A stretch of DNA of 64,000 bases from Phallusia mammillata. Its lineage: Eukaryota. Below the pieces are notes generated by a model, which had not been told where the DNA came from, did not search any database, and saw only the letters and a list, made by a program, of their open reading frames with translations. The DNA lies in assembly GCA_965637545.1 (NCBI GenBank), contig OZ281500.1, positions 10,044,001 to 10,108,000 of the forward strand, given 5' to 3'. The translations under genes and the position numbers were made by a program. Within the stretch, counting starts at the first letter, position 1; each line of letters begins with the position of its first letter. Shown piece after piece: positions 25,982 to 35,630 of the stretch.

Positions 25982-28719
25982 GACTCTTGCAAAGCGTTTT
26001 CTTTTTTTTTCTCTTATTCATAGACTCTTTATTCATATTGTTCTAATTTCTATGTGCAACGTGAAAAGTACCTTGCGTAAAATGCCGATGAGCTGAACCT
26101 ATCTGTACACAAAAGACAAGGTGCTATGGTGTGGAAACACTGTCCGTTGCGCGGGTCTGCAGCATGGGCAGCATCATTGGTTATGCTTTGTGTTTTTTTG
26201 CGTCTGTGTTTTTTCTCCTACGCTTGGACGCTTTCGGTTTGGTCGCCCACTTGATTTTTTTATGCTCATTCACTATCTGTTTCTTCATTCTCCCACTGTT
26301 CCATTTACCAACTCATATAAATGTTGCAAAGTAAAAAAATGTCAAATTTTGTCAATACAATTCGTGTGTCAGGCAACTTGTTAAGTCAAAAAAATAGTTT
26401 CTGGCCACTTTGTGGGTTTAAGTGCTAATCAATAATTTACCCCGCACTGACAACCACACATAATTAAGAGTGTAATACCAACTAAGGAACAAATGGAATT
26501 ACCAGTTGGTGTAGAAAAAATCTCCATGTTGAAGACAGGATGTAAATGCATGGCCCCTTCTAAAAGAGAAAAATTTTACTTCAAAAATTTGATTTCGAGA
26601 GATTCTAAATATGGAAGTTCTTCAAAGTAATTGGCTTGACCGCAAAATTGCTGCACAGTGGATGTAACCCGACGTACTTTGTTGTGACGTTTTTATCTCC
26701 GACAAATCACACGCCACTATTATATGTCGCACTGCGCTCCTAAAGGCTGTAATTAACCTAACCAAAAATCCTTGCGCAACGGAAACCACGACTAAACTTT
26801 GTCAAATCCACTATGTGGTATTTTGATATGTACCCTTCGAGCTGCGCATTAAATTCAAATCACACGCTCGCACACCTTTTTGACAATCCACAAAAATGTC
26901 AAGGCGAGTACGTTAGCAAGAAACGCTAGCAGACTGGATGGACTTCGTGGCATGGAGTTAATTTGGGTGACAAACATGAACGATCATACAAGTAATAAAG
27001 AATATAGAATCGGATTACGAACACGCCTTGACATGCGGTAAGGGCACGCCGGCCCAGCGGCGGGTTTTATCTGATTGAGATGATTGCCTATCGCGAGTAT
27101 TATTGAGCCAAAAAACGGTAGGTTTTACCGGGTCAATTGTACCCTAAAGGTAAAGAGTCTAAATTAGAACCGTATGATAACTTAACTCCTGTACATGGAC
27201 GGAAAAAGTTATGATCATTGCGTTTTTGCAATCTTTTCTGTTGAAATCAGATTCTAAGTCTCGTATTCGAATAAACTCGAGAAAAATGTAGCGCAGTTAA
27301 GTTGGTAATTTTGTTTCCAATTAGCATTGCCTAGTTTCGTGTAGAGCGGTGGTTACAATGAACACAAGTCATAGTTGGAAACAAGAAGGGCCATTTTATT
27401 TTTTTAGTTTGTATCTCACAAGATGACATCGTCAAGCATCGACAGAAAGCAACAGAATCAAATTGCTATGAAGTATCATCTGGATCACATTTCACGTGGT
27501 CTTTTATGTTAATCTTTAAATTGCGATCTGTCCAACGAAGCAAGGAATCCCTTATTAAAGGGTGGTTGCTTAGTCTGACTGGTTTTGTTCGGTGATAACT
27601 AGCTGCCAATTGTGCGTCGCTTATACCAAACACGAGAAATGTAACGGTTATACCACGAGCGACGGCCGAAAGGGGGGTTATTTGTTGGAATGCTTCTGGT
27701 CCATTGAGCAGAAAACAAAAGCGTCGCTACGTAAGCAGATACGGGTCAGTACTCGATGTTCAGCAAAGTTTAAGAATCCACGAAATGTCGCCGGTCGGTT
27801 TACAGTTTCAACGGTGCGTAAAGCTACGTTGAATAGAGACAGGTAACAAGCGATGTACCAGTCAAATATTTTTACGACCCAGTTCGACATTTGGTCAGCA
27901 TCGCACGAGGTGAACTTTTCATTGCTTGAACACTGCGCAGGTGTTGTGTTTCTCATGCTAGTATAGAGTGATCTCCAGCCAGCCATAAACATTGCAGTAT
28001 TCGGAAAGTACATTTCAGCGTTTGTATCTCACGTTGCTTTTAGCAGTATTGAACCGTCTGCAGCTAATATCAGATCGAGTTAAACGATGGACAAACGCGA
28101 ATGATATTTCCAATCAAACAATGCATAACTTGGCATATGTTGATTGGGTTTTTGCGCTCAAATAAAACTAATGTTAACAGGGTCGATTGGCAACAGTAAA
28201 CGTGTCTCCACACAAGTACATGCGAGGCATATAGTTTAAGATTATTTTATGACATAAATTAAGGTTGGTGAGTCATTGCTACAATGTATAATTACGTATT
28301 GCAGTCAACGTCAATTTATACCTATACCGTCAATGTAGCACTTGCTTGAGGCGAAACGTCAGTGTGTGATACCCGTTGTGGTTATATTGGTTTAACCTTT
28401 TTTATGCACCCGTGGACAGGCGGGCATAGTTGAGCGCCGCCCTCGGCCAAGCAACAGGTTTATTTGTTGAGGCTAGCGAAGATGCTAGGTCAATATTTGA
28501 CTGATTTTGATACCTCCTTTGTATTTCTAGCTAATCTGTTTTAGACCATACATGTTACATTCCATTAGCATGGATTTTTAAGACAGGATAACAAAATGTT
28601 ACACAGTCAGGATTGGGAAATTTACACCTGAACAACAACTGTAGACAAGCAAAGTTTTCTACAATGCCAACTACGAAGCGAAAATAGACACCTGTTAAGC
28701 AAATCACTGGCAGTCAAGG

Positions 28720-31700
28720 ATGAACTGGAAAACATACCGCCGTGTCCGCAAAGGACTTTTGTTTCTTGTGCTTTCGTTCGTATTTTTATCTGTATGCGTT
28801 CGAATTGTTGAACACACGGACCTAGCAAGGCATGTAATACGCAATAGTAAGCAATTAAGTCCGAACTTGAAATCTCAACAAACCAAGCACTATGTCGAAG
28901 CAGATAACAATATCAACTATGACAAAGGTGTAAACTTGACTACAAACAATGATCTTCATTTACGCAACGTTTCTCCAAAAAATAAACATACCATAGTAGT
29001 ATCGACAGTCCGGCAACATGCAACTGTGGAAAGAAACAGAACGGCTACGAATACAAGAAACACTACGGCTACGAATACAAATGATGTAACAACCAAGAAG
29101 GATGACAATTCGAAGATTAAGGAAAACGTTGACAAGCACAACATAGAGACAAATGAACAGTTTATGAATCGAATGAAGATAAGAATGGACGAGAGAAGAA
29201 AATACACCAAGGAAATGTGTGACAAACTGGGTATGTTTATGAGATGTGAACCGCAGCCTACGTTTACGTAACATAAAACGAAAGCTTCAGGCCCATAGAA
29301 AGACTCATCGATACTGGTCCATGTATTTTGAAGGCATTATTGGTTTGATTTAGTGGGTTTCAGTTTTTATCTCACTTCATTATTTTTATCTCAGTTTTTT
29401 TTGTCAAAGTTAGCATTTGTTTACATTTTAGGAATAAAGAAAAATAACGTCACGTACGAAGCGTGGCACTTATCGCTACCCACGCCGCGTCCGTGGTTTT
29501 TGAAATCAGACAAGTATCCCCTGATCTACTGCGAAATTCCCAAATCCGGAAGCACTAATTGGAAGAGGGTCATGATGGTGATGAACGGGTTGGCTAACAG
29601 CACTTCAAGCATCAAGCAGGTGACGATTATTAGCAAATGTTTGCATTATTGACCGATAAAGTGGCTGTTGTAATGAAACAATATCAAGTGTTTAACGAGA
29701 GCGTTAAGCTAAAATATACATAACGGTTTTATCAGTTCATATATGAAACATTTACAATAACTTTCGGCATAAATTTAAGTTTTTATAAAATGCTGTATAC
29801 TTGCGCTAAAATACTTCAGGAGTCTGTTTGCTTTGTCACGGGTCACTTACTCGTTTCATCGGGTAATTTTCTGGGTGTTGAATGTAGCCACAAAACGTTG
29901 AGAGCGATTTTAACCTTTTTCCCGTACTGCTTTTAAACGTGTATGGAATTTTGCTTCGTCTTTTGGCTACTTAAGTCATAAGTTTTGGTTATGAACGGTA
30001 CACTTTTCGGGTTTTGCTCGGGCTGAGTTCAGGCTTCGGTTTAAATAAAACGAGCATTAATCTTCAGAGGTTTTATATATGTTGGTGTTTTGGTTTAGGA
30101 ATTAATTATCATGCATCGTTCAGCGTTTGGAGGTTACAAACATCTAACTGATTTTTTACACACCTTGCCCTTCGATACCTAATTGCAGTCTCTCGACAAC
30201 TCTCATGTTTAGTATAATGCAATAAGTAAATGTGAGGTAAAACCGCTCGAAAAGGAAAATGCCTAATATTATGAAACCTTTTGTTTTGCAACAGGGAAAA
30301 GCACATGCCGTTAACATCGGTTGGGTAAATACAAATCCAAACACTACGCAACGTCAAAAGTACTTAAAATCGCTTAAGATGATGATTGTACGAGACCCAT
30401 TCGAGCGACTAACGTCAGCTTATCTGGACAAAGTTGCCTACAAGAAAAGTATTAACGCTTCAGTATTTGGACGATTTTCGTATGAAGTTGCCACAACATA
30501 TGGAAAATCAAACGAGAGTTTTACACCAGGTACGTGCTTTCCATAATAAGTTAGATAAGATTCAATGTCCGTTTTCTTGCACACTTCAGTAGGAAAATCG
30601 TCATTATAAGCTGGATCGTTTCTACTTACATAATGCATCCATAATTTTGTTGTTTACAGAAAACGGTATTCATCGAGTTACAGCTTGTTCATTTGAAGTT
30701 AGAGTGCTCAAATGCAAAAAGCCGAATCATGTAATAAAAGTACATGACGCAATGTTTGGGAGACAGGACGATTCAACGTGAGTGAAATAGGAATATAAAC
30801 GTACAGACTGAAAAAAAAATTCTATCGCCAACTTCATTGCTCCAGTGCTAAGTTTGTCGAACATGGCAACCTTTTCTACACAAGCAAAATATTTAAACGT
30901 CAGTTGGTTCAAACCTCGTCGGGGTCTGTATTCGAATGTTAAAAAATAAGGGGCGTTTTTTTCATAGTTTTTGCATAAATAATAATATTTCTCACTAACT
31001 TATAAGTCAAAATTACGCCAAAATAATGACACACAAAAGATACGTCCACCGTTTCCATCTTATCTTTCCTGGTGGCAAGGACACAAAGTTGTCTAAACCA
31101 ACCATGCATGCTCTTCCACAAACTTCTTGAACATGGTATTACCCATTTGCATCGATGTTACAGGTGTATGCAAAACTACGAAGGCAAAGAAGCAGTAAAC
31201 ATGCGTCCTTGTTCGTCAAAAAACGCATTGTTAATAGCTTCCCAGTTATGCGATGGAAAGCAGAAGTGCGAAGTTGTTGGGTCGCCTGTGGTGTTCGGTC
31301 ACTTGCAAGGGTGTGGAAATGTCCCAAAATATCTACAGATTGACTATCACTGTGTTGGTATGTAGGTTCAGTAAATAGTGGTAGAAGGGTTGCATTTTGT
31401 TTCAGTATATTATACACAGGGTTGGTTGTGATGTTCAAATACAGAATTGGTGCTGTTGTTTTTATCTCTTCAGTTTGTTTACAAACCAAAACAAATGCAG
31501 TAACATTTGGTGTTGAAATTTCAGATAGATCTGTCGAAAAAAACGTCACAGTTTGTGATAGAAAAAGGAAGACAGTCAAGTGTCCGGTAGGCTCAGAAAT
31601 TCGGGTGATGTCGGCATTTTTTGGTCGGCTAGAAACTACCACGTAAGTTCACCAATCCGCCATATAAAAACGTAATTTGTAGGATAATATAAAACCTTAT

Positions 31701-33327
31701 TTTGCAGATGTCGAAAGCGAGCACGAATAGCCAACGTCCATTGCGATGCCGAAACAGCAACTGCGGCGGCAATGGTTGCGTGTCACAAGAAAAACTTTTG
31801 TGTGTTGGAAGCATCAAAAACATGGATCCAGAGCGATCCTTGTCCCTCTACAGACAAATATCTTACGATGTGGTATCACTGTGAGCGTAAGTTTGCTAAA
31901 CATAAGTTAACACTGTAAATACATTTCCTTAAACCCCCACTAAAGCAGGGGTAGGCAACCTTTTTGCACTGCGGACCGTTTTCACAAAACAAGCATTTCA
32001 GCTAAAAAAATCATACTGCCCGGTAACGAACTACTCGCGGCCCGGTGCCGGACCGGCGGTTGCCGACCACTGCACAAAAGCATAACTTGGCCCAACAAAT
32101 TTTCCGTGTGGTTACCGTTTCAAATTTTTGCCAAATATTGGGCTCTTTGCCATTGAGTTTTAATATTCTGTGGCGTGGCGAAAAGTACAAGACAACGTTT
32201 TCATTACAGCTTCCACCACACAGGAAACTTCAGAAGAAGTCTCAAATTCGATTTCTTCTCCACCTACAATACTTAAAATGCCTAAAAACATTTTTAAGTA
32301 AGTGCCATGAGATGCCTTTCTGACACCAACGTTAAGTTGATATTTTAAACAAATAAAAAAGGTTTGCGCCACAAATCAGATTTACTATATGGTAATACAG
32401 CGGATAAAGGCGTTAAAGATTTTTTATCATGGCATATACTAAACTACAAACTTATTCTGCATCAGAAAGTATCCAAAGCATGCCACGTTCAACGAGTTTG
32501 TGTCATATCTGACCGATCCTGGAAACGCAGTGGTGACAAAGGACAAAATAGATCATGGATCGGGTTCGTTACGGTCTACCAACGTTCGTCACTGGCAAAA
32601 CTTCCACACATTGTGTTATCCATGTCATATCCAATACGACGTTATTGCCCATATCGAAACAATAGAGGAAGACGCAAGGTAAGAAGTACTGATGCACCAA
32701 ACCGCCTAAAAAAGTTCGGGCCCAAACCGAATGTTCGGCCAGCAGTCCGGTATATTTCTACCGAATCTGACCGAACCTAAGATTTACTTTCGTATGAATG
32801 GTTTGAACTGATTCTTACATTGTTACTGCAAGTAAGTGCTCAAGCCACAACAAAATTTACAATATAAAGGCTAAACAAAATACTTTGCAGACAGCATGAC
32901 TTGTAAAAATTGCAATACAGTTATCGTTAGTGCCATCTAGTGGACCACTTTTTAATACATTTAATTTGCAATTCTGTGGTCACATCCATACGTATTTTTT
33001 TCCTGGATGTACAGTAAAACTATGAACCTTATATTGCATGTTATCTTCGTACTTATACACGATAATAATAAGAACATATTTTGTCGTTTTAGGTATGTTT
33101 TGAATATGATTGGGGCACCGAAAAACCTCAAGTATCCGGAAGGATACAATACCGCAGGACACAGCTCAACAAATTCTTCAATAGTACATGACGCTTTTGC
33201 CAAGCTCGAACCTCGTCAGATCGAAAAACTGATCGAACTGTACAAAATAGACTACCAACTATTTCAATATAACTTTCCGCGTTTAAACAAACAAAACCTT
33301 GACAGTGTTATAAATATGCGTACATGA
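28720..33327 (+). CDS. Type II membrane carbohydrate sulfotransferase (Sulfotransfer_2, CHST8-14/HNK-1ST family) with two SUEL lectin domains inserted in the catalytic domain
   Basis: Exons 28720-29230, 29432-29619, 30295-30529, 30660-30777, 31164-31357, 31525-31642, 31708-31886, 32210-32297, 32466-32678, 33093-33327 join in one frame (intron phases 1,0,1,2,1,2,1,2,2). N-terminal TM (GLLFLVLSFVFLSVCV), 5'-PSB YCEIPKSGSTNWK, 3'-PB VRDPFERLTSAY, TFNEFVSYL, HWQNFHTLCYPCHIQYDVIAHIETIEEDA, LYKIDYQLFQY. Confidence 0.9.
30660..31357 (+). CDS. SUEL/rhamnose-binding-type lectin domain 1 (two exons) inside sulfotransferase 1
   Basis: ACSFEVRVLKCKKPNHVIKVHDAMFGRQDDSTC...CSSKNALLIASQLCDGKQKCEV...QGCGNVPKYLQIDYHC. 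It has 8 Cys plus the A-x-F/Y-GR and KYL motifs. Confidence 0.88.
31525..31886 (+). CDS. SUEL/rhamnose-binding-type lectin domain 2 (two exons) inside sulfotransferase 1
   Basis: VCDRKRKTVKCPVGSEIRVMSAFFGRLETTTC...CDAETATAAAMVACHKKNFCVLEAS...DPCPSTDKYLTMWYHC. It has 8 Cys plus the AFFGR and DPC..KYL motifs. Confidence 0.88.
31946..32072. mobile_element. Small hAT-type MITE in a sulfotransferase intron
   Basis: TIRs CAGGGGTAGGCAACC / GGTTGCCGACCACTG. Flanks CACTAAAG and CACAAAAG match at 7 of 8 positions as a TSD. Confidence 0.75.
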
Positions 33328-33806
33328 TATATTAGACGACAACACGCATGCAACACCTGCACATTTATGCACAATATTGACTTGTAAGACCGTGCGATAA
33401 TTCTTTTTTGCAATTTTCGTGTTTGATGTATGCAAACAACTCACAAGTCTCTTCAAATGTATAGATCTTAATTGTCGGCTCTAAACGCCTCCAGAAAAAC
33501 TGCTGACATGCCTCATCAACAACCAATTGTTCTTCAACGTATTCCATTCTTCTTTCTTTGTCGGGTCACGAACGTTTAGCGCGCAAAAAAATGGTTGTGA
33601 TTGTGGACTTCTTTTATTGCAATTATGGACTAAATTTAGAAGCGGTATCTTATTAATCCAGGTCACAAACAGGAATTACTGCAAATGGCAGACGGTGGTC
33701 GCAAACAAGCGCTTATAAAGGTCCTGGTATGTCCGTTTTTTTAAACGCTTTGTTTTATCATCCACGGATTGTATAAATTTAAGAAGCAGATACAATAAAA
33801 AAGAGC

Positions 33807-35630
33807 ATGCAAGGAGCGCGAGTTAGAAAACGATGGGTAGCATATTTTGTAATTATCGTTGCGCAAAGTATCTGGTTGGTATTTGTGCCAAGAAAAATAA
33901 AAAATTGGAAAGAATCAGGTAGATGCGTCTGCTTCAACTGTGAATCGAGGTAGTGTGATTTGTGTCTATTTATTGTGTAGCTGAAGTGGACAATTTGCGA
34001 CAAGGACCGTACTTACAAAGAATGGTGAACATGAAGCAGAGATGTAAACAACGACATTTCGATTATGCTAGCATTCTTTCAAAACATTTCAAATTCGACG
34101 ACAGCTTGAAACTTGTAATGTGTGAAAATCCAAAGGTTTGTAAAAATATTTCCAAGCTCATGGCACTTGTTATTTGTAAAGTTTTGCTTATATCAATTCA
34201 GCCTTTGACAAAGTTACGGACCGTCTCATCAGTTTTGTAGTACAGTACAACAATTATGTACGCATAACTTTTGATATATTTAACCTTACTGACGTTCGCA
34301 GGTAGCAAGTACAACTTGGCAAATATTATTTTTGAAGCTTGGAGGATTTAAAAAAGAGATCACACAAAAAATGAGAAAAGAGTGGGAATATCATGAAATA
34401 CCAAACAAATATTTTGAACAGTAAGGGGGCCTCTTAAGCAAACTATAGGCTTCATTAAGCTTGTAAGTTATGTAATACAAATCATTCTGTCAATAGATTA
34501 GATAGTGAGGGAGAGGCTTTGAGGCGGTTAAGTGAATACACAACATTCTTTGCAATGAGACATCCATTTGAAAGGCTGGTCTCTGCATATGTCGACAAGT
34601 TTTCCTCAAAGAGCCGATGGAACGCGTACAAACAAAGGGAGGGGAGAAAAATTGCCGAAAGTCAATTAGGCTCAGAAATTTATGGAATAAACACGTAAGA
34701 TTTTGTAGTTTATTTACAATAAATGAACAATATTTTTCGGAATAGGTACTAACACAGGAACTCACATTACATCGGTTTAATAATTTCCGCTAGGTGGCGC
34801 AAAAAGTTTTTGAACGCAAATTGTGTAAAAATGCTGACGGTTGGGGCTATTACGGCTGGACTAGACTTTCTTAATAATATTCAAAATATAATCAACTAGA
34901 ATTCCAGTACCTAACTTACGACTTACTTCTTAACTCTATTCCAGTTACACAATTATTTTGAAAATTGCGCCCTTTGTGAAATTATTAAACCTACGTACCG
35001 TGAGTTCCTGTATTAGTAGCTCTACCTAGTACCTCTACCATATCTTTCCGTCCCGTTGATAAACAACTATTTTTTTAGACACTGGCTTTCAAAAACTCCA
35101 ACCCCGTTGATTTTGCGTTCACCGGCTTTTCTGAAACTTTCAGCACCAAATAAAAAACAAATGCTAGAGAAAATCTTTGTTCTCAAGTCCGGAGAAATAT
35201 CTTTTCAACAATTTGTCAAGTAAGTCATAACAATATCAGTAAACCTTCAGCGAAAACTTGTTCAACGTGTTTCTTGCTTAGCTATATCGTTGACAACTAT
35301 CAAAGTAAGGAACAAATTAAAACAATGGATCATCACTGGATACCACAAGTCTACAACTGCATGCCATGCTATGTGAACTACAGCTTCGTGATTCGTTTCG
35401 AAAGCCTTAGTACCGATTCGCAGTATTTACTCAACTACTTACAAAGAAAAACGACAACCAATCTAACGTTTCCCCTAACTGGACCTCCACAAACCAGTCA
35501 GAATATCACGCAAAAGATGTTCCAACTTTTACCCGAGCAACAAGTGGACAAGCTTCGCAAAATTTATGCTGACGACTTTTATGTTTTTGATTATGATCTG
35601 TACTTGTATCAAGGATACAAAGGTACTTGA
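33807..35630 (+). CDS. Second tandem carbohydrate sulfotransferase (Sulfotransfer_2 family), no lectin insert
   Basis: Exons 33807-33918, 33981-34135, 34302-34420, 34497-34694, 35079-35219, 35282-35630. TM WVAYFVIIVAQSIWLVFV, 5'-PSB MCENPKVASTTW, 3'-PB MRHPFERLVSAYVDKF, SFQQFV, DHHWIPQVYNCMPCYVNYSFVIRFESL, IYADDFYVFDY. Confidence 0.88.

Follow-up and report, generated by a model that had tools for sequence, protein, structure and literature searches.

Golgi sulfotransferases are thought to locate their acceptors by the catalytic cleft alone, and how they select particular chains or carriers is poorly understood. Within this group, enzymes of the CHST8-14/HNK-1ST type normally consist of a transmembrane anchor, a stem and a catalytic domain. 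A locus in the ascidian Phallusia mammillata raises the question of whether such an enzyme can hold lectin domains inside its catalytic domain and, if it does, whether those lectins read glycans. We analysed a 64,000-nucleotide window of contig OZ281500.1 (NCBI GenBank assembly GCA_965637545.1, positions 10,044,001 to 10,108,000 of the forward strand), in which position 1 is the first letter. The window contains, at 28720-33327, a transcribed gene of ten exons, present once in the genome, that encodes a carbohydrate sulfotransferase of the Sulfotransfer_2 family (CHST8-14/HNK-1ST-like) with a predicted type II membrane topology; two SUEL lectin domains interrupt its catalytic domain. The ten exons lie on the plus strand with GT..AG borders throughout and splice into a single frame of 2079 nt, equal to 692 codons and a stop; arithmetic and a codon-by-codon check confirmed that the frame holds over nine introns and that all split codons are sense. 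A single spliced frame had been proposed in a preliminary description of the stretch and was upheld, with the three junctions given there (30529/30660, 31886/32210 and 32297/32466) proving exact. The encoded protein runs from a membrane anchor and stem through the 5′-phosphosulfate-binding (5′-PSB) and 3′-phosphate-binding (3′-PB) motifs to SUEL1, SUEL2, a Ser/Thr/Pro linker and the C-terminal half of Sulfotransfer_2. The exons, numbered E1 to E10, are listed here with matches from Pfam searches, which like the homology searches were run per exon:

E1, 28720-29230, plus strand: start codon, short basic cytoplasmic tail, anchor and Asn/Thr-rich stem (from translation)
E2, 29432-29619, plus strand: start of the catalytic domain, with the 5′-PSB (Pfam Sulfotransfer_2 positions 3-33, 38.7 bits)
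E3, 30295-30529, plus strand: 3′-PB and the next helix, with a phase-1 end that is the insertion point (Pfam Sulfotransfer_2 positions 64-109, 38.1 bits)
E4, 30660-30777, plus strand: first half of SUEL1, with two Cys and FGR; phase 1 in, phase 2 out
E5, 31164-31357, plus strand: second half of SUEL1, with six Cys, QGC in place of DPC, and KYL; phase 2 in, phase 1 out
E6, 31525-31642, plus strand: first half of SUEL2, with two Cys and Cys-x-Cys...FFGR (from translation)
E7, 31708-31886, plus strand: second half of SUEL2, with six Cys, DPC and KYL (Pfam SUEL_Lectin positions 26-80)
E8, 32210-32297, plus strand: Ser/Thr/Pro-rich linker; phase 1 in, phase 2 out (from translation)
E9, 32466-32678, plus strand: restart of the catalytic domain, with the ATFNEFVSYL helix and the HW...CYPC...YD block (Pfam Sulfotransfer_2 positions 132-186)
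E10, 33093-33327, plus strand: end of the catalytic domain and stop codon (Pfam Sulfotransfer_2 positions 188-252)

Is the catalytic domain complete, and do the lectins truly lie within it? Each of E2, E3, E9 and E10 matches the 252-position Sulfotransfer_2 profile (PF03567) with 34-39 bits against a cut-off of 22. The 5′-PSB PKSGSTNWK (29539-29565) and the 3′-PB RDPFERLTSAY (30391-30423) are both intact and occupy invariant columns of a 34-sequence alignment. The C-terminal family block, comprising an E-F helix, H-W, C-x-x-C and Y, is present in E9, which aligns with E188/F189, H206/W207, C214, C217 and Y221 (the invariant E, F, H, W, C, C and Y columns) of P0012, a 299-residue, insert-free, CHST11-like beetle enzyme. 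The Sulfotransfer_2 match breaks from about profile position 109-127 to 132 of 252, and the insert at this point amounts to 233 residues: two SUEL domains (203 residues on four exons) and the Ser/Thr/Pro linker (one exon). Because the half containing the 3′-PB precedes the SUEL lectins and the C-terminal half follows them in the Pfam matches, the lectins lie inside the catalytic domain; the per-exon matches thus agree with the earlier claim that the pair splits Sulfotransfer_2 rather than flanking it. The contiguous catalytic domain usual for the family is therefore not found here, an architectural departure from the Sulfotransfer_2 norm under which the homology stands. A hydrophobic signal anchor is predicted in E1 at residues ~12-30 (28753-28809), and the order of basic tail, anchor and stem suggests a type II Golgi layout.

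The position of the insert in the fold can be read from the beetle enzyme, which the four catalytic exons tile end to end, with E3 aligning to P0012 residues ~100-178 and E9 aligning from residue 184. PF03567 occurs without SUEL in all of the 120 best relatives of P0012 (120/120). An AlphaFold model of P0012, made with the 34-sequence alignment, has a predicted local distance difference test score (pLDDT) of 88.4 and a predicted template modelling score (pTM) of 0.83. Because E3 ends near P0012 residue 178 and E9 resumes at 184, the insert, placed on this model, takes the place of the short link that joins helix 152-169 to helix 186-195; E188/F189 are in the second of these helices. A Foldseek search with the P0012 model recovered distant sulfotransferases only (E ≥ 0.02).

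Are the lectin exons part of the sulfotransferase transcript? Four public runs from three studies were mapped over 28300-33900. Two of these (X1 and X2) are unspliced and uninformative on splicing, and the other two (X5 and X9), from two further studies, consist of spliced contigs that cover seven of the nine junctions (E1-2, E2-3, E3-4, E5-6, E6-7, E7-8 and E8-9). The E1-2 (29230/29432) and E2-3 (29619/30295) joints are found in both X5 and X9, as is E6-7 (31642/31708), and E5-6 (31357/31525) is found in X5. An X9 contig carries the E3-4 joint (30529/30660) with 114 nt on its shorter side; E7-8 (31886/32210) and E8-9 also occur in X9, where a single contig spans E6-E7-E8-E9. Contigs derived from cDNA therefore cross both borders of the insert. 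With the E3-4 and E7-8-9 joints seen, the lectin exons lie within the transcript, as the preliminary description had claimed, and are neither always skipped nor confined to a separate nested transcript.

The same runs yielded further observations at the locus. Two single-base differences resemble ordinary polymorphism: C>T at 30526 (run X2), which changes Pro to Ser in the last codon ahead of the insert, and G>A at 32564 (runs X1, X2 and X5), which changes Gly to Asp in E9. Intron 7 contains a dispersed repeat at 31941-32075, for which a first look across the genome gave 939 candidates (82-93% identity), most often with two arms ~150 bp apart; an inverted-repeat scan detected no inverted repeat inside the intron 7 copy. 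This repeat accounts for the loose ends and a back-joint of an X9 contig at 31961-32072. Contig depth in X1/X2 reaches 166-800 over 33317-33900, compared with 4-7 over the remaining gene, and this jump could reflect a repeat or a very highly expressed transcript overlapping the 3′ untranslated region and the first exon of the neighbouring gene.

Can the inserted lectins bind sugar? SUEL domains are recognized by eight cysteines together with the motifs YGR, DPC and KYL, and in most characterized cases they bind rhamnose or galactose independently of calcium (PMC10817417). The second halves of both domains match the 80-position SUEL_Lectin profile (PF02140) above the Pfam cut-off of 31.4 bits (E5, positions 29-80, 38.6 bits; E7, positions 26-80, 40.4 bits). 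The first halves match weakly (E4, positions 1-21, 14.8 bits) or, for E6 alone, not at all in Pfam, because the SUEL domains are divided between exons and the searches took one exon at a time; the E8 linker is likewise without a Pfam match. Eight cysteines (two plus six) are retained in each SUEL domain of the gene. SUEL2 carries FGR, DPC and KYL, and SUEL1 carries FGR, QGC without DPC, and KYL. Conservation of the lectin fold is clear; SUEL2 could plausibly have a functional sugar site, and for SUEL1 such a site is doubtful.

How widely is this architecture shared? The 240 Mb P. mammillata genome contains a single copy of the gene, about 20 other Sulfotransfer_2 loci and many SUEL arrays, and no other Sulfotransfer_2 locus in it coincides with a SUEL locus. 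Run exhaustively against 1.84 billion representatives, phmmer returned 7 proteins for E3, none of which is a full-length annotated orthologue. One is the UniProt entry H2Z449 ('Carbohydrate sulfotransferase') from Ciona savignyi, a 196-residue fragment with a 5′-PSB and 3′-PB followed by the start of a SUEL domain, in which the Pfam sulfotransferase match reaches profile position 127. H2Z449 is orthologue-like, with 41% identity over E3, the motif CEIPKSG.TNWK and a passage from the 3′-PB into the first SUEL strand pair, but the entry is a truncated model predicted automatically, with PF03567 as its sole annotation, and its lectin part is unannotated and ends after ~30 residues. A search with H2Z449 itself as query found two insect enzymes only, among them the beetle P0012. 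The only long match to E3, P0007 (653 aa), has two tandem complete CHST-like sulfotransferase domains. The remaining matches are single-exon open reading frame calls, for which we fetched the flanks and searched them by tblastn with the exons of the P. mammillata gene.

Unannotated contigs from at least four other assemblies have the same architecture with matching intron phases. L009/L013 and L007/L014, from two ENA assemblies, contain the full order of E2, E3, two SUEL1 exons, two SUEL2 exons, E9 and E10, and L010/L011 contain the partial order of E2, E3 and E4 before the contig ends. In L005/L006, E2, E3 and E4 precede an inverted copy of the lectin exons: past the E4-like exon come E5-like and E4-like exons in reverse orientation (L005 13832-17516 and L006 4153-7291). 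Here the lectin cassette has been rearranged or duplicated in inverted form, and both contigs of the sample show the change. Splice phases at each located orthologue boundary are those of the P. mammillata gene, the E10 junction phase is conserved in L013, L014 and L001 (a lectin-less relative considered below), and Pfam supports the presence of SUEL on the orthologous exons. Identity to the P. mammillata gene is 61-70% for E9, 47-63% for E2/E3, 51-52% for E7 and 34-47% for SUEL1. The best-conserved SUEL2 of all is that of L014 (47.6 bits), which keeps the three hallmark motifs; in the SUEL1 of the same contig (3733-5036) the YGR motif reads FGA, with GR lost. An E8-like linker exon was not located by tblastn or tblastx in L001, L013 or L014. 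Two haplotype-like contigs of one sample, L007 and L008, differ at 6/411 nt of the lectin exons, 6/321 nt of the catalytic exons and 8.3% of the intron; constraint on the lectin exons is therefore about as tight as on the catalytic ones.

Where might the insert have come from? Both lectin exon pairs (E4+E5, 312 nt; E6+E7, 297 nt) are phase 1 at entry and exit, and each is interrupted by a phase-2 intron that splits a Thr codon (AC|N) lying a few residues past FGR. SUEL-repeat genes on C3 and C4 of the same genome are built from the same module, in which the first exon ends AC|GT a few residues past YGR, the second exon starts at the third cysteine, and the module is phase 1 at its outer borders. 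An intron is found at the equivalent place both in the downstream paralogue (33807-35630) and in L001. Because the 1-2-1 phases and the intron position match the SUEL repeats of the genome and an equivalent intron exists elsewhere, the cassette appears to have arisen by exon shuffling, with lectin modules of two exons each entering a phase-1 intron that already existed. The insertion is old, since the best identity to any SUEL array copy is ~47% over 37 residues and the junction is common to C. savignyi. The arrays, large tandem series of canonical SUEL domains with YGR, DPC and KY[IL], lie at 5.77-5.80 Mb of C4 and 28.09-28.10 Mb of C3 (L018 and L019), and L018 includes a recently duplicated SUEL block of ~6.3 kb. 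The paralogue at 33807-35630 (plus strand), the next gene downstream, is a lectin-less Sulfotransfer_2 gene with a transmembrane anchor, RHPFERLVSAY and DHHW...CMPC, and its 5′-PSB PK|VASTTW is split by an intron.

What, then, does the insert do? On the sequence evidence, we consider it probable that the gene encodes a sulfotransferase with intact motifs for 3′-phosphoadenosine 5′-phosphosulfate (PAPS) whose catalytic halves close normally, with an internal SUEL pair of which at least SUEL2 binds a sugar on the acceptor or its carrier. In the Golgi lumen, these halves would come together in the ordinary sulfotransferase fold, leaving the disulfide-rich lectins to project from a loop at the surface. 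The ligand of SUEL2, which has the FGR/DPC/KYL motifs, would be a galactose- or rhamnose-like sugar, and its binding would raise the local substrate concentration or restrict the choice of chains that are sulfated. A more far-reaching version, which we put forward tentatively, is that the SUEL pair tethers the enzyme to tunicate polymers that are of galactose type or rich in L-sugars, making sulfation chain-selective or processive, as an ascidian-wide feature that was shuffled in. Candidate tether polymers would include sulfated tunic galactans and certain dermatan/chondroitin carriers. If this holds, the enzyme would be the first of the sulfotransferases to carry a lectin 'reader' internally.

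Several points weigh against this reading or limit it. DPC is absent from SUEL1 in the P. mammillata gene and in every orthologue seen, SUEL1 of L014 has lost two of its eight cysteines (the first and the seventh) and at 28.2 bits falls below the Pfam cut-off, and SUEL2 of L013 has NSC/NYL where others have DPC/KYL; glycan binding is therefore not uniformly conserved. The JGI contig set L001-L004, with an E9 that is 68% identical, has no lectin exons in a 2.3 kb intron, so the enzyme can evidently do without lectins. L001 retains a phase-1 donor after E3 and a phase-2 acceptor before E9; either an undetected small exon or another donor, AG|GTGGAA, must carry it from phase 1 to phase 2. All versions of the gene, compared pairwise, show star-like identities (44-65%) and no lectin-less close paralogue was found in the P. 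mammillata genome; on these grounds we read L001 as a lineage that has probably lost the cassette, the alternative being an early-branching state. Sequence searches of the PDB with E3 and E9 gave chance matches only, and no solved CHST8-14 structure was found. The E4-5 and E9-10 (32678/33093) joints occur in no spliced contig of the four runs, and these two joints are supported by the frame, by Pfam continuity and by the conservation of orthologue phases.

These observations bear on three other explanations. The losses in SUEL1 and in L013 and L014, together with conservation that rests mainly on the cysteine framework and (F/Y)GR and with the existence of a lectin-less relative, would fit a genuine lectin-fold insert that does not read glycans and in which the SUEL sugar site has partly decayed. 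Its role would then be that of a protein-protein, oligomerization, Golgi-retention or folding/quality-control module, or of a steric gate at the active site. We regard this as rather unlikely, however, because SUEL2 retains the three hallmark motifs both in P. mammillata and in L014, the lectin exons are constrained like the catalytic ones between the haplotype-like contigs, and most characterized SUEL domains are calcium-independent sugar binders (PMC10817417). The lectin-less gene of another organism would also suit a regulated splicing cassette, with isoforms that contain zero, one, two or a hybrid lectin and differ in targeting; E4-7 total 609 nt, the exon pairs are phase 1-1, and skipping of E4-7 is frame-neutral. 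Against this, no lectin-skipping joint was found among the four runs from three studies, where every joint seen takes in the lectin exons, a weak objection since assembled contigs drop rare variants, and we judge a splicing cassette improbable. The last explanation, that the architecture is an artefact in which a lectin gene is nested in a sulfotransferase intron or the region is mis-assembled, can draw on the plain intron that L001 and the neighbouring paralogue have where the lectin exons sit, but is scarcely credible: spliced contigs physically link E3-E4 and E7-E8-E9, the frame is kept across nine introns, and independent assemblies as well as the C. savignyi protein record repeat the order and phases.

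A sulfotransferase with an internal SUEL pair shares features with several known systems. Like CHST8-14/HNK-1ST enzymes, it has a type II anchor and stem, a 5′-PSB, a 3′-PB and an HW...C.PC...Y block, but those enzymes are contiguous where the P. mammillata gene has 233 residues between two helices. Its lectins share with SUEL/rhamnose-binding lectins a domain of ~100 residues, eight cysteines and, in full only in SUEL2, the motifs (Y/F)GR, DPC and KYL, as well as the two-exon module of the C3/C4 arrays; whereas those are free or repeat lectins, here the pair lies inside an enzyme and SUEL1 is without DPC. Polypeptide N-acetylgalactosaminyltransferases (ppGalNAc-transferases) have a ricin-type lectin that is appended at the C terminus, not inserted. 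Together with WSCD1/2 they resemble the P. mammillata enzyme in being type II Golgi proteins that join a glycan-modifying domain to carbohydrate-binding-type modules, and they differ in that their accessory folds are unlike SUEL. WSCD1/2 are PAPS-dependent sialate O-sulfotransferases with two WSC domains, a 5′-PSB and a 3′-PB (PMC9304399). Pattern matching found no PAPS motifs near WSC exons fetched from the P. mammillata genome. Lectin-assisted glycan enzymes are thus already known, and domain insertion as such is not new. A search for literature pairing carbohydrate sulfotransferases or Sulfotransfer_2 with SUEL or Gal_Lectin found nothing relevant. The novelty suggested in the preliminary description accordingly stands in so far as no paper on the architecture was found, and is qualified by the conservation of the gene in several assemblies and by UniProt H2Z449, which already contains the junction, unremarked.

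For the biology of glycan sulfation, the P. mammillata enzyme is a natural test of whether an attached glycan reader alters sulfation specificity or processivity, with the natural lectin-less relative serving as the comparison. Should the lectins be inert, the gene would be an evolutionary curiosity. The locus is also a case in which the insertion of a domain by exon shuffling is clean and can be dated, in phase 1-2-1 modules shared with SUEL repeats of the same genome, and the gene may lead to the enzymes that make the unusual sulfated polysaccharides of ascidians.

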